Origin: Vitrella brassicaformis CCMP3155
Lineage: Eukaryota; Protista; Chromerida
Assembly (NCBI GenBank): GCA_001179505.1
Contig: CDMY01000740.1
Coordinates: 1 to 25,604, forward strand
Reading direction: 5' to 3'
Length of the DNA stretch: 25,604 nt
This document shows, one piece after another, positions 6,836 to 21,500 of the stretch (its first letter is position 1; every line of letters begins with the position of its first letter). Below the pieces are notes generated by a model, which made no database searches, was not told the origin of the DNA, and saw nothing but the letters and a program-made list of their open reading frames with translations. Position numbers and translations under genes: made by a program.

Positions 6836-8468
6836 TTAAGAAAAGCACCCACTCTCCTTCCCTTTCTTCTCTTCATCACCATGTATCCGTACCTTTAGCT
6901 GCTCCAGCTTTAGGCAATCGGCGATGAGGCGGTCAGGACTGCCGCACGCGAAGCACGCCCGCACCTTTCCTTTCCCAGTCTTACCACCCTTGCCGGCACC
7001 CTTGCCACCACCCTTGGCACCCTCGGAGCCCTTGTGGGGCTTCTTCTTGTTGCTGATGCCCGCTTGATGGTCTGCTGGCTGTTCGGTGGCTTCCCGTGTC
7101 CTTTCTTGCCCTTGGTCTTACTGACGGTCACCTTCTGGGCAGAGCACAGCATCATCTCCTCCAGCTGGCCAGCAGCCTGGCTGCCCTGTGCGACAGAGGG
7201 ACGCTGCTTCAGCATGTCGTTCCTCTGACGGCACATCGTGAGCAGCTCCCTGAATGACGGCTTCAAGCGGATATCCTCCGCGAGCTTCCCCTTTATCATT
7301 CCCCTATATGAATTCTCCGACCGGGGTTTTTTCCACCTGGAATTCCGATGCGTGTAGGCAGCGTATGCGAGAGCTGTTTTGGTTAAGCAAAACTAGACAG
7401 TATGCTCTCGCTTCTGATGCCATCCACATGTCGTTCGGCAGCTGAACAAAGGAGGGAAAAAAGAAAACGATTTATGGCAATCCCTTCCAGTTTCCCGGAT
7501 TTCCCCTTTACTGTTTTACGGACACGCCTGCCCTTCGGGCAGGCACTCCACTTGTCCCTGTGAAGGCTTCAGGGAGTCCCTTGAAGAAGAATTCCGCCTT
7601 CTGCACGTCCGCCAGGGGTGCGATGTCCAGGACGTCAGCCAGCGCATTGCAGTCTGTCACATATATGTTGAAGACCGCAATCGCCTGCTCGAGCGTCCAG
7701 TCCTGCTGCCAGCAGAAGGACACCAGCTTGCTGAATGCCGACGCGTGGTGCCTCGGCCGATCTGGCTGGTAGGTGGCCCTGAGGGCCTCCCACGCCACCA
7801 CGCCGTCCGCAGCGCCGTCTGCCTGCTGCAGCACCGCCAACGCCTCAGGATTGCCCTCGAACGATTGCCCTCGAACCCCCTGTCGTTAGACGAGACCGCC
7901 TTTAGCAGTACGCGTAGAGATGTTGGCTGTCCTTCTCGTACTGTTCAGGGTTGAGCTCCTTCATGGCTTCCCGCTTCCTCGCGTTGAGCAGGTAGTCAAC
8001 CTTGGCGAGCTCCATGCACTTCTCGGCATGCCAGTTGAAGGTCAGGTAGGGGTTCTTATTGTCCCTGTCATCCGGCTGCTTCAGTGGGATTAGGTCGAGC
8101 TTCTTGCGCTTCAGGACAGGCTGCTTGTCCTTATCGCGCTTCCGCTTCTTGCCCTTGCTCCGCTTCGACTTGTCGGACGAGACAGACATGCGCTCGTCGT
8201 TAGCCGACGTGACTTGGCCATGAGCAGCCGCTGCTGCGTCCGCCATGTGTACATCACCGAAGTGACCTCCCTCCGCGCCAGATCCGTCCATCTCGCCGCT
8301 TGGCGGCTCGACTTCGGGACCGGCGGGGTGATGCCCTCCGGGTGGTGCTTCCTTGCACTGATCTGGGTTTCCGCCACCACCGCTGGTATCGCTGTCCATG
8401 TCTCCTTGACCCTCATCATCGTGTGGAGGCTCCCCATGTTGAGATCTCTCATCATCCGCACCGTTCAT
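6836..8468 (-). pseudogene. gag: Ty1/copia-type gag pseudogene (frameshifted; pol absent)
   Basis: ORFs 7902..8468, 7508..7840 and 6910..7299 plus a shifted frame can be stitched together. They give LYA(Y)LLKAV...DGVVAWEALRATY...KAEFFFKGLPEAF (copia gag signature) and a degenerate zinc knuckle CFACGSPDRLIADC at 6914-6955 (CX2CX4HX4C with H to R). Lesions: a 1-nt deletion near 7908, a 14-bp tandem duplication (7849-7862/7863-7876), an insertion at ~7296-7510 and further 1-nt shifts. Confidence 0.8.
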
Positions 8469-8504
8469 GTCTCAGCTGAGTGCTTGTTGGCTATCTGCAG
8501 CTAG

Positions 8505-8514
8505 TGGGCTCATA
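8505..8514 (-). other. Primer-binding site of the half-tRNAiMet type
   Basis: Minus-strand TATGAGCCCA is complementary to the initiator tRNA anticodon arm UGGGCUCAUA. It lies 3 nt after the putative LTR end (TTAAGA) and ~37 nt before the gag ATG. Ty5 and Drosophila copia are known to prime in this way. Confidence 0.6.
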
Positions 8515-8517
8515 GTC

Positions 8518-8769
8518 TCTTAAAGTCAGACAGCTTCACGAGTTCACCAGCGCCAACCAAATCAAAGAGCTTCACAAGTTAACCACCGCCAGACAAGCGA
8601 GAGATTAAGTGATGCACGAAGGAGTCTGAGGCACCAGCCAGTAACTACGATCTACTAGCGATCCAAGTGCGCGACGTCGCTCGGGATTCCCTTCACTCTT
8701 GTGCCTCAGGCGTTCATCTGCCATGGCTGCCAGCCTTCCCTGAGGCTGTGGGCGTCCGCACTTTCAACA
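8518..8769 (-). mobile_element. Putative 5' LTR (~252 bp, TG...GA termini) of the minus-strand copia element
   Basis: The minus strand begins TGTTGAAAG at 8769 and ends TTAAGA at 8518, directly before the PBS. No second LTR is in the window, so the outer boundary is inferred. Confidence 0.45.
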
Positions 8770-8799
8770 GCTCTCACTGTGGCTTCCTGATTCATTCGC

Positions 8800-10661
8800 A
8801 TGGGATTGCCAAGGGAATTCAATCGGGTGCTGCACGAGCACCTGAAATATTACGCCGCCTGGGAGCCCATCAGCAACCACTTCGTCCTCGGGAACTGGGG
8901 CGTCATTGAGAACGGCGTGTTTGTGTCACATGGGAACATCCGTGACTTAGACCCTGCCCTGAGTGACATCATCAGGGAAAGCGGAGTCAGCCGTGAGGCC
9001 TTCGAGGATTTCCGCTCCAGCGTGACCGTCAACGTCAGGACTGCCGGGGAGGGCACGGCCGACCTTCAGGTGTTGGATGGCGATGTCGCGGCCTCTCTCG
9101 AGTTCAAGTTCACAGAACGCAACGCTGTCCTGTTCAAGGGGTCTGTCGAGACCGTCAAGATTCTCAACGTGGACGAAGTATTGGGGCGGCTTGTCTCTCT
9201 TCCTGGCTGGAAGCGCCACTTCCGAGTTGTGGTGGGCCTCCGTAGAGGCAAGAACTGCACCATCGTCGCCGCAAGGGAGGCGGGTGCTACGGTGGCCTTC
9301 GGTGGCAGAGCAGAAGTGCTGCGGAAAATCCAAGCTGGCGCGATGGTAGCTGCCGGAGACTTCACAGTGCACGGAGAGGGCGCTACGAGCCTGTGCATTG
9401 TCGGCAAAGAAGGGGTGGTGGGTCTCGATTTGAGACGCGCCAAAGTGTCCACGTTTTCTTTCCGCTCTGACAACCTTCCCCTCCCCCTGGTTGCCCCGCT
9501 GAATGAGCCGCCGATTGGTCCTCGACGCCTGCCCCCGGTTACCGCGCTGAATGAGTCGCCGGTTGCTCCTTGCCAGAACGGCTCCTCGCCCATCAGCCGC
9601 TGCTTGGCTTCTTTCCTGAAGGCGAGTGCGCTGTGCATAGCGGTAGTGGTCGGCACCCCACTGTTCGTGGTGTTGCTCCTGCTCATAAGTGTGGTATTGG
9701 GGATCTGCTCGCCGTTCCTTCTCATCGCGAAGCTCCTGAAACCCTGTGCCCCTGATTGCTGCCTGCCCTTCCTGGATCGTTTGAATCTCGTGACGGAAGG
9801 AATAATTGGGGCGATTGGTTTACAGTCGGTGGCCTTCGCGTCCCCCCACCTTGCCGCCCCCCCGGCAGCCGCCGCCCCTCCCTTGCCGTCCCTCATTGGT
9901 TTACCGTCGGCGGCCTCCACGCCCCCCCGGCGGCCCCTCAGCGCCTCCCCCATGCCNNNNNNNNNNNNNNNNNNNNNNNNNNNNNNNNNNNNNNNNNNNN
10001 NNNNNNNNNNNNNNNNNNNNNNNNNNNNNNNNNNNNNNNNNNNNNNNNNNNNNNNNNNNNNNNNNNNNNNNNNNNNNNNNNNNNNNNNNNNNNNNNNNNN
10101 NNNNNNNNNNNNNNNNNNNNNNNNNNNNNNNNNNNNNNNNNNNNNNNNNNNNNNNNNNNNNNNNNNNNNNNNNNNNNNNNNNNNNNNNNNNNNNNNNNNN
10201 NNNNNNNNNNNNNNNNNNNNNNNNNNNNNNNNNNNNNNNNNNNNNNNNNNNNNNNNCCCCCCCCCCCCCCCCCCCCCCCCCTGCACCCCGCCGTGCAGGG
10301 GATGTCGAGCAAATGTGGCGAGGAAGGTACGGATCTATCGATGGCTGAGATGGACTGCTCGCTTGGCACGTTGAATGTCGTGTCTGCCCCTCTCTGTGTA
10401 TATGTCAGAGCTCGTCGAGGGAGCTTGTGGCCCATTCCACCATCAGTTCAGGGGGATCTTGGGAGTGTTGAGTTGCACTGTGATGAAGAAGCGGAGTTCC
10501 ATGAGTTCTACGAGGCCCCTCAGGTGTCGTCTTATCGGGTCGTGACTAAAGATGCGGAGGGGTCGACAGTCGTATTGGAAGTCGAAATGGATTGGGGTGA
10601 TGAGCTGTCCGATGACATGACGGAGGAGGCGTCTGGTGAAGATAGCGAGTTTCCGATGTAG
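8800..10661 (+). CDS. Gasdermin-like pore-forming protein with C-terminal membrane hairpin (continuity across the gap is inferred)
   Basis: ATG at 8800 follows an in-frame TGA at 8788, and the frame is uninterrupted to the gap at 9957. Residues 1-215 show gasdermin N-domain hallmarks as I recall them for bacterial/fungal-type members: YYAAWEP...LGNWG, an amphipathic beta region, ILNVDEVLGRL, W-x3-F-x-VV-x2-L-x2-G-x2-CTI and terminal VVGLDLRR. A Pro-rich linker and the uncharged stretch A275-A310 follow. After the gap, poly-Pro plus an acidic tail end at 10661 (frame of ORF 9756..10661). Confidence 0.72.
9957..10256. other. Assembly gap (300 N) within a GC/poly-C Pro-coding stretch
   Basis: N run; the true length and reading frame across it are unknown. 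Confidence 0.99.
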
Positions 10662-10974
10662 GAGGGACCATAGATTATCTTTCTGCTTTTCCAGTATGCT
10701 CTATGGGGTAGTTCTTTTTAGTGTCATGGGCTGATTGTCAGTCATGGGAGGGGAGGAGGTTGGAGGGGAAGAATGGACGGAGGCCTCGGACTTTGCTGTG
10801 CTTCTTGTGCTAGTCCGAGGCCAACTCGGTTGCTTTTGTGATAGTGCCGATATGGTAGATTTTATTAGTGTACATTTCTCCTGTTCTTTCTTTCTGCCTG
10901 ATGTGCATGACTTCTTAATGTATGACTCCACTCGCTACCTCACATGAGTCTCCCTCTCTTCGGTTTCTCTGTGT

Positions 10975-14164: not shown

Positions 14165-14742
14165 CCATCATATACACACACACTCCAAGTCGGCGTGTGC
14201 ATGCGCAGGTGTGCGCACAGAGACGTTTATCATATACTCACACTCCAAGTCCAACCGTGCATGCATAGGTGTGCGCATACAGACATTCATCATATACTCA
14301 GACTCCACGTCCAAACGTGCATGCGCAGGTGTGCGTACAGAGACATTCATCGTATACAAAGAGACACGGTGGATGGTGTGTGGGGCAGAGAGGCCAATGG
14401 TTTTTTCAGCCGCCTGGTTGAGAAGCTGCGCACCAAGGCTGCGTGGGCAGACAAGTCGTATGGCCACGTGATGGGGTGGGTTCGTGCCCGTCTGTCTGTT
14501 GCGTTGGCGCGTAGTGCGAGTATGTGTGTGCGTGGTGGGCGGCGCCGCTGGAAGATACGCCAGGCGGGCGCTGAGGATGGTGCTGGCATGTTTGTCGCAT
14601 GATTGAGGGTTGGTCGATTGACGCAGTTCCTTTCATGAGAGACCGACAGACTCTGCCTGCCGTTGCGCTATGAGTTAACGTATTTCCACACCTATACAAA
14701 GAGACATTCATCATATACACACACAGAGACATTCATCATATA
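14165..14742 (-). repeat. 60-bp minisatellite array A4 (CA orientation), interrupted by a retroelement insertion
   Basis: Reverse-complement units at 14165-14352, resuming at 14707-14742. Confidence 0.9.
14353..14706 (+). mobile_element. 5'-truncated CRE-clade non-LTR retrotransposon (family Y) with 14-bp target-site duplication
   Basis: TATACAAAGAGACA occurs at 14353-14366 and 14693-14706. The insert encodes TVDGVWGREANGFFSRLVEKL...WADKSYGHVMGWVRARLSVALARSASMCVRGGRR...DGAGM* (REL C-terminus, stop at 14600-14602) plus a ~90-bp 3' UTR. Confidence 0.85.
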
Positions 14743-15405
14743 TCGATTGAAGTGATTCAACAAATTGGCCCACAACGGGTCTGACACACACAATGACGCG
14801 TGACAGACACGCGCTGTGGTTTTGTCGGTGTCTCTATGGATGCATCCCAATAATTCAGCGGGTATGTGTGCACATTTGTTGGAGAAAAAGGGCTGCGCGA
14901 GGATGTCTCCCCTTGCGAGCCTGTTGGGGGCCTTCGGGGGCGTGAGGTTTTGAACACGCACAAGGAGATAAGCATCGGAGCCGTGAAGATCATGGTGTGG
15001 GCCCTCTTCTTACTTTTGCTCGCCATTCGCCACGAGAGAGCCTTCACCTTCGGGCCATGTGAGTGAATCACAGAGGATTCATTGATGTCATCTGTGTTGT
15101 GTCGTCACATACAAATGAGGATTTCTTCAAGGCGCTGTTTGGTACCTCTGACTTCTTATCGCCGTCCTGTGCTTCCACGATGACCGTCACGAGCGGAGCT
15201 GATTCTGGGGTCGGCACGCTCAGGGAGGCACTTGGCACGCTGGAAGCACAAAACCCCGAGACAGAGACGGCCATACGATGCGTCCGCGTTTCGGCAGGGA
15301 TCACGGACATTGTTGTAGGGAGTCCTCTGACTTTCGGAGGTGCTGAATCGTGCATTCTTACATATGCGAGTGGTGGCATGCCTGTCTCTCTTTGTCTTAC
15401 CGACT

Positions 15406-17640
15406 TGCATACGCAGGTCGCATGCACAGGTGTGCGCACAGAGACGTTCAGCATATACACACACTCCAAGTCCAAGCGTGCACGCGCAAGTGTGCGGACA
15501 CATTCATCAGGTAAACACACCTCAAGTCCAAAAGTGCATGCGCAAGGGTGCTCACCCATACATTCATCATATACACAGACGCCACGTCCAAACGTGTATG
15601 CACAGGTGTGCGCACAGACATTCATCATATACACACACTCCAAGTCGACACGTGCAGGACAGCAGTGCGCACAGATACATTCATCATATACACACACTCC
15701 AAGTCAACACGTGCATGCGCAGGTGTGCGTACAGACATTCATCATTATACACACTCCAGGTCGACGCGTGCAGAGACATTTATCATTAAACACACTCCAA
15801 GTCGACGCGTGCATGCGCAGGTGTGCGTACAGAGACATTCAAACGTGCATGCGCAGGTGTGCGCACACACAGACATCATATACACACACTCCAAGTCGAC
15901 ACGTGCACGGCAGGTGTGCGCACACAGACATTCATCATATACACACACTCCAAGCCGACACGTGCATGGGCAGGTGTGCGCACAGAGACGTTCGACGTAT
16001 ACACGCACTTCAAGTCGACGCGTGTATGCGCAGGTGTGAGCATACAGACATTCATCATACATACACACACACTCCAAGTCGATGCGTGCATGCGCAGGTG
16101 TGCGCACACGGACATGTCGACGCGTGCATGCGCAGGTGTGCGCACAGAGACATTCATTATGTATACACACACTCCAAGTCGACGCGTGCATGCGCAGATG
16201 TGCGTACAGACATTCATCATTACACACACTCCAAGTCGACGCGTGCATGCGCAGGTGTGCAGACAGAGACATTCGACATTCATCATATACACACACTCCA
16301 AGTCGACGCGTGTATGCGCAGGTGTGCGCACACATTCATTAGGTATACACACCCCAATTCCACACGTGCATGCGCAGGTGTGCATACAGACATTCATCAT
16401 ATACACACACTCCAAGTCGACACGTGCACGGCAGGAGTGCGCACAGAGACATTCATCATATACACACACTCCAAGTCAACACGTGCATGCGCAGGTGTGC
16501 GTACAGAGACATTCAAACGTGCATGCGCAGGTGTGCGCACAGGGACATTCATCATATATACACAGACTCCACGTCCAAACGTGCATGCGCAGGTGTGCGC
16601 AGACAGACATTCACCATATACACACACTCCAAGTCAACACCTGCATGCGCGACATTCATCATTACACACACTCCAAGTCCACACGTGCATGCGCAGATAT
16701 GCGCATAGACACGTTCATCATATATGCACACCCTCCAAGTCCAAACGTGTATGCGCAGGTGTGCGCACAGAGACATTCATCATAGACACACACACTCCAA
16801 GTCGAAATTTCGAAACGTGCTCGTACAGGTGTGCGCAGAGAGTCATTCATCATGTACACACAATCCAAGTTGGCGCGTATATGCGCAGGTGTGCACACAC
16901 AGGTATTCATCATATACACACACTCCAAGTCCACGCGTGCATGCGCAGGTGTACGCACACAGACATTCATCATAGACACACACATTCCAAGTCAACACGT
17001 GTCCAAGTCAACACGTGCATGCGCAGGTATGCGCACAGAGATATTCATCACAGACACACACTCCAAGTCGACGCGTGCATGCGCAGCTGTCTGCACAGAG
17101 ATATTCATCATTACACACACTCCAAGTCGACGCGTGCATGCGCAGGTGTGCGTACAGAGACATTCATCATATACGCACACACAGACATTTATTATATACA
17201 CACACTCCAAGTCGACACGTGTATGCGCACGTGTGCGCAGAAAGACATTCATCATACACACACATACTCCACGTCCAAACGTGTATGCGCAGGTGTGCAG
17301 ACAGAGACATTCGACATTCATCATATACACACACTCCAAGTCGACGCGTGTATGCGCAGGTGTGCGCACACATTCATCAGGTACACACACCCCAAGTCCA
17401 CACGTGCATGCGCAGGTGTGCATACAGACATTCATCATATACACACACTCCAAGTCAACACGTGCATGCCCAGGTGTGCGTACAACACACTCCAAGTCGA
17501 CGCGTGGCTGCGCAGGCGTGCTCACAAAGACATTCAATACATACACACACTCCAAGTCCACGCGTATATGCGCAGGTGTGCACGCAGAGACATTCACTAC
17601 GTAGACATACTTCACGTCGAGCTCCAAGTCGACGCGTGTA
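15406..17640 (-). repeat. 60-bp minisatellite array A5 (CA orientation, ~37 units)
   Basis: Reverse-complement consensus units, with a higher-order duplication of period ~1038 bp (16261 vs 17299). Confidence 0.95.
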
Positions 17641-17941
17641 CATCAAGCAAGCTGAGTTCATTCCTGGCCAAGGCATGTAGAACGAAGACGTCTGTGCCAG
17701 GATCTGATTGTGTTATCGTGTTTATTCTGCCGCCCTCGAGCGCATTCACGAAGTCACTGCATGAGGACGCAATCATAAGTTGTATCGAGTGTGTTCGCTA
17801 GTTCGTGAGACAGACACTTTACCTGAAATGCTTCCTGATTACGCCCCTGGACCTTTCTGGTTTTTTTATGGTTGCCTCGAGACTAGCGCCTTCCACACAC
17901 GAGAGGCCACCAGATGGGGCCGGCTCGCAGGCCACCGTTAT

Positions 17942-18846: not shown

Positions 18847-20087
18847 ATGGAGCGCCTTCTCTGTGGCTACTTGTTCTTGTTGTTGCTGGCTAGCTCTCTG
18901 GCGAGAGGCGAGGACAAGCCCCACTTCCACTTCTCCTATGGAGGCATCAAGACGCATCTCGCTCTTTCGACGCTGGTATACCATTATGGGAAGCTTCTGG
19001 AACCCCCCGACATCCATTTCTCTACAGCCGGGAATGAGACGATTGTGACCGATAGCGTCGGGGTAGGCAGCCTCACAATGGCGCTATGTGTGGCAACGTG
19101 TGCTTTCTTTTCATCCTCAGATGCCAGAGTCAACGCCTCAAGACAGCAGATATAATATTCTTGAAGCAGCGCGCTACCTCAAGGATACATTCCCCCAGGG
19201 CAGAGTCACTTGGTACGCGTGAAGATGAGTTATGGCTGCGTTTCACCATCTCATTATTACGTTACATCTCATGAGTTGCGCCTGCTCTTAGGTTTCGGGA
19301 CCTCCGCAGGACTGACCTCCAGGTCGGCCTCACCATAAGCGCTAAGTCTTCAGCGATGGCCGTTGTTTTCCGCGGGACAGAAACGTGGTTTGACTGGGCC
19401 GTCGATCTCAAGTGCGCGAAGCACAGCTGAACAAAGGAGTATGAATAAGCATCAAACACTGCCTTTTCTTCTTCCTGTGTCTACAGGATCTCGAAAAAGG
19501 CGCTCCCTGGTGATGTCGACAGTGTGTACGTGCACGAGGGCTTCTTCTGGAAGCTTTTCAGCAAAGGAGACGACGGCCAAAGTGTCTATGACCTGATTCT
19601 TCGAGCGGTCCGGGAGGAACTAAAGAAGCATCAATACGAATACATCTATGTGACCGGCCACAGTCTTGGTGGAGCGCTTGCGACCCTCTGTGGCTACCAA
19701 TTGGCGAAAGACCTGCCGGATCGCCAGATTTGGGTGGTTTCGTTTGCGAGCCCCCGAGTCGGCAACCAAGCATGGAAAGATGCCTTCCACATGACGCCCA
19801 ACCTAGAGCATGTCCGAGTGGCTGTTCATGGTGATCCGGTAACTTCAGGGCCACTGATCCGGTACAAGCATGTGGGCGATGTCATCAAGCTGTATGAGGA
19901 CAAGGTGCTCTTCTTCCAGAAGCATGAGGACAGCATGACGAGATTTTGGTGGTTCAATGTGAAGTGGAACTTTGAAGGGGCAAAGAGGGACCACTCGCTG
20001 GCCCAATATTGGGCGAATCTCGGCAACAACTGGTGGTCGTATCACTCGAGACAAGTTGAGACGTGTGTGGTAGAAGGGGAGCTGTGA
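18847..20087 (+). CDS. Secreted class-3 (fungal-type) lipase, alpha/beta hydrolase; join(18847..19062,19121..19212,19292..19411,19487..20087), 342 aa
   Basis: Signal peptide MERLLCGYLFLLLLASSLARG. Three phase-compatible GT-AG introns (58, 79 and 75 nt). Lipase_3 motifs VVFRGT-W-DW-DL, VHEGF, YVTGHSLGGALA (nucleophile Ser), SFASPRVGN, GDPV (Asp) and DHS (His). Confidence 0.93.
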
Positions 20088-20743
20088 TGAAACGGAAGCA
20101 TTGCAAGGAATGAGTGCCAGTGATGGGCTTATTTTTCTAACAGGGAGCCGACTGGGAGCCGCCCATATATATACAGGCTTCTTCTTTTTCTGGTGAGAGC
20201 AGAGCGCTGTGCTGTGCATCTGTTGTGTCGGCGGGCATGGTGTGTTGGCCCGTCTCTCTTATTTATGAAATGACATACGGCATCGTTTTATGCATAGATG
20301 TGTTTGCTGTCAATCACAATGCATGGCCATCTATCGCACGTGTGTGGTTCACGAAAAGGGTGTGCTTGCGTGATGGACAATGTGTATGTGCTTTTATGTG
20401 TGATCTTTCTTACGTGTACGGATGGCCTCCTCTTTTTATACATGTGCCTGCTGTACGCCTTCCTTTCTTTTTACGCATGGTCGCCCGCTGTTCATGAGAA
20501 GACACGAAGATATGGTACGAAAACACTGCGACTGAGAAGTTCATGTATACAAAGCGTTGACGGCGAGTCGAGTGAGTGGATGTAGGAAATGGATAAATAT
20601 AGGCATAACCATCTATCCTCATGTTCTTAATTAGCGTACCTCACCAATCTACACATACGCGCACGCACAGAGGGTACACACACACACACACCTACACGAT
20701 GCATCCATGCAAGTACCACCCCCTGCATATATATATTATATAT

Positions 20744-21500
20744 GTGCAGGTGCGCGCACAGAGATATTCTTAATATGCACACTCCCAACTCGACGCGTGT
20801 TCTCCCAACTCGACGCGTGTATGCGCAGGTGTACGGACAGAGATATTCTTTATATACACACACTCCAAGTCGAATCTGATGAATGCCTGTGTGCGCACAC
20901 TGCGCATGCACGTTTGGACTTGGGGTGTGTGTATCTGATGAATGTCTGTGTGCGCACACTGCGCATGCACATTTGGACTTGCACTGTGTATATGGCGCAT
21001 GCACGCGTCGAGTTGCAGTGCGTCTGAGATGAACGTCTCTATGCGCACACCTGCGCATGCGCGTTTGGACTTGGGGTGTTTGTAAATGATGAATGTCTGT
21101 GTGCGCACACCTGCGTATACACGTGCCGACTTGGAGTGAGTGCATATGATGAATGTCTCTATGCGCGCACACTTGCGCATGCACGTTTGGACTTCAAGTG
21201 TGTGTGTATATAATGATTGTCTCTGTGCGCACACTGGCAAATGCTCGTTTGGACGTGAAGTGTGTGTGTGTAATGAATGTCTGTCTGTGGACACCTGCGC
21301 CTGCACGTTTGCACTTGAAGTGTGTGTACATGATGCATGTCTGTGTGCGCCCTGCGCGTGCACGTTTGGACGTGGAGTATGTGTATATGGTGAATGTCCC
21401 TATGGGTACATGGTGAATGTCCACCTGCGCATGCACGTTTGCACTTGAAGTGTGTGTATGATGAATGTGTGTGTGCGCCACCTGCGCATGCACGTATGGA
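20744..21500. repeat. 60-bp minisatellite array A6 with an internal orientation switch (CA orientation to ~20872, TG orientation from ~20876)
   Basis: ...cactccaagtcga is joined almost directly to tgatgaatgcctgtgtgcgcac...; the units are more diverged than those of A3/A5. Confidence 0.9.

Follow-up and report, generated by a model that had tools for sequence, protein, structure and literature searches.

A putative gasdermin-fold pore former in the chromerid alga Vitrella brassicaformis and its bacterial relatives

Gasdermins are a prime example of immunity common to bacteria and animals. In the papers searched, they are described in animals, fungi, bacteria, archaea and poxviruses only. In the solved bacterial gasdermins (bGSDMs) a C-terminal peptide acts as an autoinhibitor that is removed by a protease, and the protease-adjacent arrangement of the genes defines the bacterial gasdermin systems (Johnson et al., bioRxiv 10.1101/2021.06.07.447441). 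Here we report the analysis of a gene on contig CDMY01000740.1 of the 72.7-Mb genome of Vitrella brassicaformis CCMP3155, the whole contig of 25,604 nucleotides being referred to as the window. An open reading frame (ORF) on the forward strand opens with the ATG at position 8800 and encodes a protein whose first 215 residues are predicted to adopt the gasdermin N-terminal fold. The chromerid Vitrella, a relative of the malaria parasite, is the free-living photosynthetic sister of the apicomplexan parasites.

No literature pairing gasdermin with Vitrella was found, and alveolate gasdermins are not reported in the papers searched. Protists and algae are unmentioned in a microbial gasdermin review of 2024, a family review of 2026 and a 'primitive pyroptosis' study of 2026, and in surveys that trace bacterial immune genes into eukaryotes gasdermin figures only as a case yet to examine. 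The new aspect is a protein of predicted gasdermin fold in a new lineage and with a new architecture. We consider it likely that this protein is a latent gasdermin-fold pore former, which stems from a bacterial defence cassette of gasdermin plus protease and now belongs to a small eukaryotic gene family. If this is true, regulated pore-forming cell death extends to alveolates, a datable transfer of a death effector from bacterium to eukaryote is at hand, and new regulatory designs (membrane anchor, ubiquitin fusions, displaced inhibitory tail) are added to those described.

Predicted fold and bacterial sequence family

The structure of Vitrella residues 1-225 was predicted with AlphaFold2 on the basis of 80 relatives. 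The model exhibits a mean predicted local distance difference test score (pLDDT) of 90.5 and a predicted template-modelling score of 0.85, with the pLDDT falling to 59 past residue 220; the long beta-strands, which are the prospective hairpins, are predicted with high confidence. In a Foldseek search of this model against the PDB, ranks 1-11 were all gasdermins, including GSDMA3, GSDMD, RCD-1, GSDMB, Trichoplax GSDM and, as the best match (E 8.2e-4, probability 1.00), the Vitiosangium bGSDM pore 9a84. Alignment of the Foldseek candidates with VIA-align gave gasdermins at ranks 1-21, with 8sl0 at Z 9.7 (root-mean-square deviation 3.9, 151 residues aligned) and proteins of the CDC/MACPF type at 5.4 or below. 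An exhaustive VIA-align run over 48,161 PDB representatives, which is independent of Foldseek, again returned gasdermins as the top 14 (Z 9.7-5.7). The first non-gasdermin there is a CDC-like protein tied at Z 5.7, unrelated folds reach at most 4.7, and rank 50 stands at 2.9. A second AlphaFold2 model was built for the full-length bacterial relative P0032 on 110 other sequences. With a pLDDT of 92.6, gasdermins in the first 15 Foldseek places (best E 3.7e-5) and a Z of 10.9 to 8sl0, it is in accordance with the first. The gasdermin N-terminal fold, which comprises an N-terminal helix, extension regions and a twisted beta-sheet core, can be assigned with high confidence to the models of both Vitrella residues 1-215 and P0032, as the first-pass annotation had proposed from motifs. 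In the ESM Atlas, the closest clusters by shape are unnamed bacterial hypothetical proteins (template-modelling (TM) score 0.74-0.77), followed by a bGSDM cluster (0.52) and gasdermin-C (0.48); when language-model features are compared, a cluster with 11% Bact_GSDM-annotated members scores 0.96.

To place the domain by sequence, residues 1-225 were searched exhaustively with HMMER against 1.84 billion cluster representatives. Homologs were found in 286 representatives at E<=1e-3 and in 74 at E<=1e-10 (best E 4.7e-27). With few exceptions they measure 230-270 aa and align over their whole length at 25-37% identity, the best bacterial one at 37%. Judged by sequence, residues 1-215 are part of an extensive bacterial family, which consists of proteins of about 240 aa and lacks a Pfam name. 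Its most conserved columns are AAW.P, LGD[YF]G and a G..G pair near 202-205, with W21, P23, G31, G34 and G45 among them. In a genome scan seeded with 12 closer sequences, with one genome per GTDB species, the family was detected across several phyla, both in named bacteria (Actinoplanes, Paractinoplanes, Larkinella, Spirosoma, Aquiflexum, Nannocystis) and in metagenome-assembled genomes of Pirellulaceae, Gemmatimonadales, Acidobacteriaceae and Pseudomonadota. Every sequence relative recovered is either bacterial or a member of a small eukaryotic clade. Searched alone, the window protein gave nothing useful against Pfam, PDB sequences and NCBIfam, and word-index homolog searches returned only the query itself or two profile members.

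The profile of the family points towards gasdermins. Against the PDB, its sole match below an E of 0.1 is the Bradyrhizobium bGSDM 7n50 (E 0.0045; next 0.28). Among the PADLOC models, bGSDM is the only one matched by more than one of 110 members, with weak matches in 14 of them at E<=1 (best 8.1e-5), and the NCBIfam model prok_gasdermin matches 2 of 80 members (best 0.0011). We read the family as a divergent bacterial gasdermin branch outside the current curated models.

The gene neighborhood of the bacterial relatives was inspected as well. In all five examined metagenomic contigs that carry a relative of about 240 aa or a fusion (P0050), protease genes lie beside or near it: a Trypsin_2-Lipase_3 fusion; TIR and CHAT; two CHAT; CHAT-TPR and TIR-Trypsin_2; and CHAT with Peptidase_C14. 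In 25 named bacterial genomes, CHAT was found in 12 of 37 scanned flanking ORFs, 11 of these with a TPR-S sensor, and one further ORF is a subtilase. The CHAT ORF is typically about 630 aa long and begins directly after the gasdermin-like gene. A large bacterial family beside CHAT proteases is missed by the current Pfam gasdermin models, so that the census of bacterial gasdermins may be an underestimate.

Three bacterial fusion proteins were noted on metagenomic contigs (L011, L012). P0050 carries an N-terminal ParA/AAA_31 ATPase and the gasdermin-like domain at aa 547-750, P0075 has TIR_2 N-terminal to the gasdermin-like domain, and in P0138 a peptidoglycan-binding domain lies downstream of it. 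The latter is reminiscent of a bGSDM-LysM fusion reported in Sci Adv 2026 (PMC13475620).

Gene structure and surroundings

The frame opened at 8800 is uninterrupted up to an assembly gap at 9958. Its residues 1-225 are 100% identical to residues 1-225 of P0001, an uncharacterised 452-aa protein of Vitrella brassicaformis CCMP3155 annotated as 'unnamed protein product', and this identity also bears out the earlier guess that the DNA is from an alveolate alga. The ORF is real: with 286 homologous cluster representatives at E<=1e-3 and an identical annotated N-terminus, a chance ORF was rejected. All motifs quoted in the first-pass annotation were found again, namely the N-terminal helix, YYAAWEP-x6-LGNWG, VTVNVRTAG, ASLEFKF, ILNVDEVLGRL, WKRHFRVVVGLRRGKNCTI, TVAFGG, FTVHGE and VVGLDLRR. 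Contigs from four public sequencing runs (X1, X2, X3, X7) were mapped onto 8400-10900. Together with the sequence they give the following features.

8800-9444, forward strand: gasdermin-like, predicted pore-forming domain, aa 1-215; single exon, HMMER family match over aa 1-217, AlphaFold2 pLDDT 90.5, top structural matches only gasdermins
9445-9591, forward strand: linker rich in Pro and Ser, aa 216-264, containing a short repeat (LVAPLNEPPIGP / VTALNESPVAP); 11 of 51 residues are Pro, outside the fold
9592-9750, forward strand: stretch of strong hydrophobicity, aa 265-317, which may be a membrane hairpin or anchor; Kyte-Doolittle mean over 19 residues as high as 3.0
9751-9957, forward strand: Cys-, Ala- and Pro-rich continuation of the ORF to the gap; frame open, X3 contig passes the annotated donor at 9906 and reaches 9950
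9958-10257, no strand: assembly gap of 300 N with C-rich, proline-coding flanks; contigs from all four runs break there
10258-10326, forward strand: proline-rich exon end (...PPPPAPRRAGDVEQMWRG), spliced to the last exon according to an X3 contig; frame open and in phase with the last exon
10327-10408, forward strand: intron of 82 nt, GT..AG, donor AAG|GTACGG; joint in an X3 contig
10409-10660, forward strand: last exon, acidic C-terminal region, stop at 10658-10660; matches P0001 aa 369-452, covered by contigs of X1, X2, X3 and X7
10545-10619, forward strand: tail module, aa about 415-439 (...VVLEVEMDWGDELSDDM), candidate autoinhibitory peptide; recurs in paralogs C839 and C761 and at locus L013 of another assembly

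The contig from run X3 covers 10294-10324 and then jumps to 10407, which with the cut set at +2 joins 10326 to 10409. Since this joint has GT..AG ends, the contig derives from spliced RNA. The acceptor of the 82-nt intron is that of the P0001 model, and acceptor and last exon are correct as annotated. The donor differs from the annotated one at 9906, and a second X3 contig reads straight across 9906 to the gap. The annotated intron (9906-10408, spanning the gap) is therefore probably wrong, and the deposited protein of 452 aa is in consequence probably too short. Most likely the ORF extends across the gap, which would conceal a proline-rich coding region. Accordingly, the description of the ORF as intronless holds for the gasdermin-like domain, which lies in a single exon, but not for the gene, where the ORF is interrupted by 300 N and followed by the 82-nt intron. 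In two small runs guessed to be RNA, coverage of the gene starts at 8773, just upstream of the ATG, and spans the ORF and the last exon. This start fits transcription, the evidence consisting of contigs with a guessed RNA label.

After the fold, the protein thus continues with the Pro/Ser-rich linker, a candidate cleavage region, followed by the hydrophobic stretch, the Cys/Ala/Pro-rich segment, the gap and the acidic end.

The first-pass annotation had also placed an intron-containing lipase gene beside the ORF. A Lipase_3 gene is indeed present at 19362-20087 on the forward strand (E 2e-24), and stops within the match point to probable introns; its position, however, is about 8.7 kb downstream of the gasdermin-like gene, beyond a repeat-rich stretch. 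It is one of 14 Lipase_3 matches in the Vitrella genome. Degenerate repeats at about 14200-17800 and 20600-21500 give rise to long spurious ORFs on both strands, such as the one at 15063-17801 (912 aa), which consists of 'HTHSKSTRACAGV'-like units and is without a Pfam match. A Pfam scan of ten large window ORFs returned no domain, several of them being artefacts of CA-rich repeats.

Paralogs, ubiquitin fusions and the tail module

Related copies occur at three further sites of the Vitrella genome, on contigs C745 (E 3e-24), C839 and C761, the last being a degenerate remnant. Where measured (C745, C839), the paralogs are 33-36% identical to the window copy. The gasdermin-like part appears to continue over an intron into ubiquitin on C839 and, judged from ORFs, also on C745 and C761. 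The ubiquitin domains are recognised by Pfam with E 1e-10 to 1e-16 and end in RAGG, RLRGGG or RGGGG. The copy on C839 (L003/L004) corresponds to P0053, a protein of 512 aa that comprises the gasdermin-like domain, a linker, ubiquitin at aa 361-430 (Pfam E 1.7e-16) ending in RAGG, and a tail; it is also contained in an independent MMETSP transcriptome. On C745 (L002, 1147-3326, forward strand) an N-terminal extension of about 105 aa precedes the gasdermin-like domain and a ubiquitin ending in RLRGGG. At the end of contig C761 (L015, 4327-5994, forward strand) a degenerate gasdermin-like C-terminal part is followed by ubiquitin ending in GGGG, a linker, the tail VVFFVRTDWGDELPDDV and an acidic run.

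Two observations on the surroundings of these copies were made. Downstream on C745, a second, truncated gasdermin-like start (GSQMKLARCLNM) runs into the N-terminal domain of a glycosyl hydrolase of family 2. The end of C761 shows an apparent start of a Macro domain (GDITTLKCDAIVNNANQ); on this fragment, Pfam reported no Macro.

A further gasdermin-like gene, encoding P0156, was found in another eukaryote-like assembly (GCA_029979955.1, locus L013, JARPNH010007142.1, 800-4542). P0156 is 43% identical to P0053 over 210 columns of the tree alignment. Head to head with it lie, on one strand, a Lipase_3 ORF and two ubiquitin-domain ORFs, the last of which ends in IEFEVHKDWGHEVADDF. These three consecutive minus-strand ORFs appear to be one gene; if so, the cassette of ubiquitin plus tail serves two effector types. 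Besides L013, a lipase neighborhood was noted for the bacterial relative P0002 (L005, 381-2723), which adjoins the Trypsin_2-Lipase_3 fusion. The linkage of gasdermin and lipase (window, L005, L013) may be conserved, with a post hoc chance estimate of about 0.004. An additional candidate, P0125 (L014, a 1.7-kb contig of run ERR4592243, 438 aa), combines a gasdermin-like N-domain with a Ser-rich region, an acidic run and a basic KRKR end; the contig may be a transcript of a further eukaryote.

Beyond the gasdermin-like domain, an acidic 'DWGD.L.DD' tail is preserved at the far C-terminus. Between pore domain and tail lies the hydrophobic hairpin in the window gene or ubiquitin in the paralogs; the hydrophobic stretch is exclusive to the window copy and absent from P0053. 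The module of about 25 residues follows ubiquitin in three other places: in P0053 (...IVFLLHTDWGDKLTDHDI, acidic DWGDKLTDHDI), on C761, where a whole-genome six-frame search gave 47% identity over 38 aa (E 7.8e-5), and at L013. The last exon of the window gene shares the tail and a PIPP motif with the sequence that follows the gasdermin-like domain in the paralogs, so its N-terminal and C-terminal parts belong together. A similar motif, such as IKIEYSEDWTELDDDL or EADWGEDLPSDL, terminates many of the bacterial relatives. Among 114 of them, 51 have an acidic-acidic-hydrophobic end and 21 the fuller [WF]...DD-hydrophobic pattern. The P0032 model shows a disordered linker (pLDDT 54-60), its last 14 residues exceed a pLDDT of 90, and the alignments to the inactive bGSDM crystals 7n50, 7n51 and 7n52 extend into the C-terminal peptide on both sides.

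With regard to origin, a branch of a 66-row LG+G4 tree (SH-like approximate likelihood ratio 93) sets the three Vitrella N-domains apart together with P0156, as one clade among bacterial sequences. In a 121-row tree the window copy is adjacent to the other three (eukaryotic) sequences, without support. This fits a single acquisition, putatively from bacteria, with subsequent duplication.

Proposed mechanism, alternatives and comparison with known systems

For pore formation, autoinhibition and trigger we infer the following course. Residues 1-215 would be a latent pore former, kept closed by the short acidic C-terminal peptide (...VVLEVEMDWGDELSDDM) lying across the beta-sheet core as in bacterial gasdermins. 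This peptide would act from a distance of about 200 or more residues, behind proline-rich linkers and the hydrophobic hairpin, which could attach the protein to a membrane so that its two ends face the same side. A protease cut in the linker would free the domain from the tail; the freed domain would then oligomerise, insert its beta-hairpins and form a large pore, resulting in cell death or in opening of the compartment in which it is anchored. Since the tail of the paralogs comes after a ubiquitin domain with a GG end, the activating cut might there be made after ubiquitin-GG by a ubiquitin-specific protease.

A wider hypothesis, which we regard as possible but doubtful, is a ubiquitin-gated death-effector system in Vitrella and at least one other eukaryote. 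In this view, different effectors of bacterial origin, namely the gasdermin-like pore formers and, in L013, a class-3 lipase, would be kept latent by a portable cassette of ubiquitin-GG plus acidic DWG tail. A ubiquitin-specific protease, which infection or stress may activate, would remove the tail by cutting after GG and so take the place of the ancestral caspase-like protease. The window copy would be a variant with a hairpin as membrane pre-anchor instead of ubiquitin.

Several findings weigh against a latent gasdermin pore former. The TM-scores of the Vitrella model to solved gasdermins are modest (0.23-0.44 in Foldseek), and Z 9.7 does not greatly exceed the values of 7-8 attainable by models that lack a clear match. 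The link to known gasdermins by sequence is weak but consistent, at the edge of detection; even at E<=1, none of 110 family members matches Pfam PF04598 Gasdermin or PF26164 Bact_GSDM, nor does the window protein. At position 32 the Vitrella protein carries N, where 90% of the family have D. The N-terminal cysteine of bGSDMs (C3/C4, palmitoylated in most) is absent, as the window protein starts with MGLPREF, and a Cys within the first six residues occurs in a single one of 114 relatives. With a profile built from the bacterial tails, the Vitrella tail scored 6.0 bits and was not separated from the best shuffled control (7.2 bits); homology of the tail to the bacterial C-terminal peptide thus remains a suggestion at motif level and is not statistically established. 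In a complex test, residues 1-225 and 400-452 reached a score of 0.58 versus 0.00 for the best control, with runs agreeing in at least 71% of contacts and a partner pLDDT of at least 55. This counts as 'weak support'. Of 78 solved complexes 51 attained this mark, as did 2 of 108 mismatched pairs; with scores of 0.60 or below, however, just 5 of the 78 solved complexes attained it, together with every one of the 4 passing mismatches. No protease was recognised among the large ORFs of the window and none near any Vitrella copy. CHAT matches in the Vitrella genome number zero, and its three caspase-like (C14) loci are all on other contigs. Operon-type gene linkage is not expected in a eukaryote. 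Finally, an assembly gap breaks the gene model, and the evidence for expression consists of contigs from runs whose RNA nature is guessed.

Some of these points would also suit a protein that has the gasdermin fold and makes no pores, that is, a domesticated lipid- or membrane-binding or regulatory protein whose anchor is structural or serves trafficking. Neither pejvakin nor the poxvirus gasdermin homolog A47 is known as an executioner, the hydrophobic anchor has no counterpart among described gasdermins, and the replaced D32, the lack of a partner protease nearby and of CHAT in the genome, and the weak tail evidence would be in line with such a role. Against it, nine of ten other checked invariant or near-invariant columns are retained (M1, W21, P23, G31, G34, G45, S73, G202 and G205; W137 was not confirmed by eye), the long beta-strands that would form hairpins are predicted confidently, and the conservation of the tail module at four eukaryotic loci suggests that a latent-effector logic is under selection. 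We therefore hold this alternative to be unlikely, though it has more in its favor than the remaining ones. A decaying or mis-assembled gene, in which the N-terminal ORF is a relic of transfer, the C-terminal exon is foreign and no full-length protein is made, seems improbable. The gap within the gene, the contig contradicting the annotated intron, the degenerate remnant on C761 and the truncated second start on C745 could be explained in this way; yet the ORF is intact over at least 386 codons with the conserved residues of the family, contigs of the two guessed-RNA runs start just upstream of the ATG and cover ORF and last exon, and the last exon has the tail and PIPP motif of the paralogs.

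Another fold, be it of a beta-rich pore former of CDC/MACPF or aerolysin type or an unrelated beta-sandwich that resembles gasdermin in the model, is very improbable. CDC-like and MACPF proteins are listed at Z 3-5.7, and the structural models are predictions, but gasdermins stand above CDC/MACPF in three independent rankings and for two models from different alignments. In addition, the sequence profiles indicate bGSDM and nothing else, and size, domain limits and protease neighborhood are those of bacterial gasdermins. The better match to MACPF/CDC or aerolysin considered in the first-pass annotation did not appear: one CDC-like protein ties with the weakest gasdermin, other CDC/MACPF proteins score lower and aerolysin is absent. 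This fold was thus rejected, with gasdermins outranking it in both Foldseek and VIA-align. Bacterial contamination or a chimeric contig, a concern raised at the same place, is hardly credible. It could be supposed since the nearest relatives are bacterial and the domain lies within one exon. On the other hand, a spliced contig with GT..AG ends exists, the copies at three more genomic loci have diverged to 33-36% identity where measured and are joined to ubiquitin exons across introns, clearly in two cases and probably in one, and one paralog is present in the independent MMETSP transcriptome. Further, the Vitrella contig bears the probably intron-containing lipase gene and eukaryote-type repeats, and the best bacterial identity is just 37%. 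Contamination was rejected on the grounds of the spliced contig, the diverged intron-bearing paralogs and the transcriptome. Overall, the latent gasdermin-fold pore former is the reading that we prefer.

Among the known systems, the bGSDMs of Vitiosangium (7n51/8sl0/9a84), Runella (7n52) and Bradyrhizobium (7n50) are the best structural matches, with Z 9.7 for the Vitrella protein and 10.9 for the bacterial relative, and the pore domain is of equal size. The bacterial relatives share with them a short C-terminal peptide after a flexible linker (as modelled), neighbors of the CHAT, caspase-like, trypsin-like or subtilase type, and in some cases TPR sensors. In contrast, sequence similarity is at the detection limit (Pfam Bact_GSDM 0 of 110), and the Vitrella protein is extended at its C-terminus by some 240 or more residues, with the hydrophobic hairpin between domain and tail. 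Its gene is eukaryotic, intron-bearing and without an adjacent protease.

The likeness to compact gasdermins claimed at the outset thus stands for the bacterial ones and is weaker for the fungal ones. Fungal RCD-1 and HET-Q1 are compact gasdermin-fold proteins of non-animal eukaryotes as well and act in regulated cell death, but with Z 6.2-7.0 (8jyy, 8jyz, 8jyx) they are more distant than bGSDM in both structure and sequence, which brings the kinship closer to the bacterial side. RCD-1 is activated without cleavage by heteromeric allele interaction, and HET-Q1 is cleaved by a neighboring subtilisin-like protease; neither feature is seen for the Vitrella protein. Animal gasdermins (GSDMA-E N-domains, Trichoplax GSDM, pejvakin; Z 5.7-7.4) have the same N-terminal pore-forming fold and are autoinhibited by their C-terminal part, as is proposed for Vitrella. 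However, the latter lacks the helical Gasdermin_C repressor of about 200 aa and a Pfam Gasdermin match, and its proposed inhibitor is a peptide of about 25 aa.

A broader parallel is offered by prokaryotic defence, in which latent effectors (alpha/beta-hydrolase, MBL-fold and other modules) are released by site-specific proteolysis, as outlined in bioRxiv 10.1101/2025.11.14.688446, the abstract of which names effector modules other than gasdermins, the latter being mentioned in its text. The Lipase_3 effector with ubiquitin plus tail at L013 and the Trypsin_2-Lipase_3 fusion beside a bacterial relative (L005) may correspond to such protease-activated effectors, the link being made by neighborhood and short tail.

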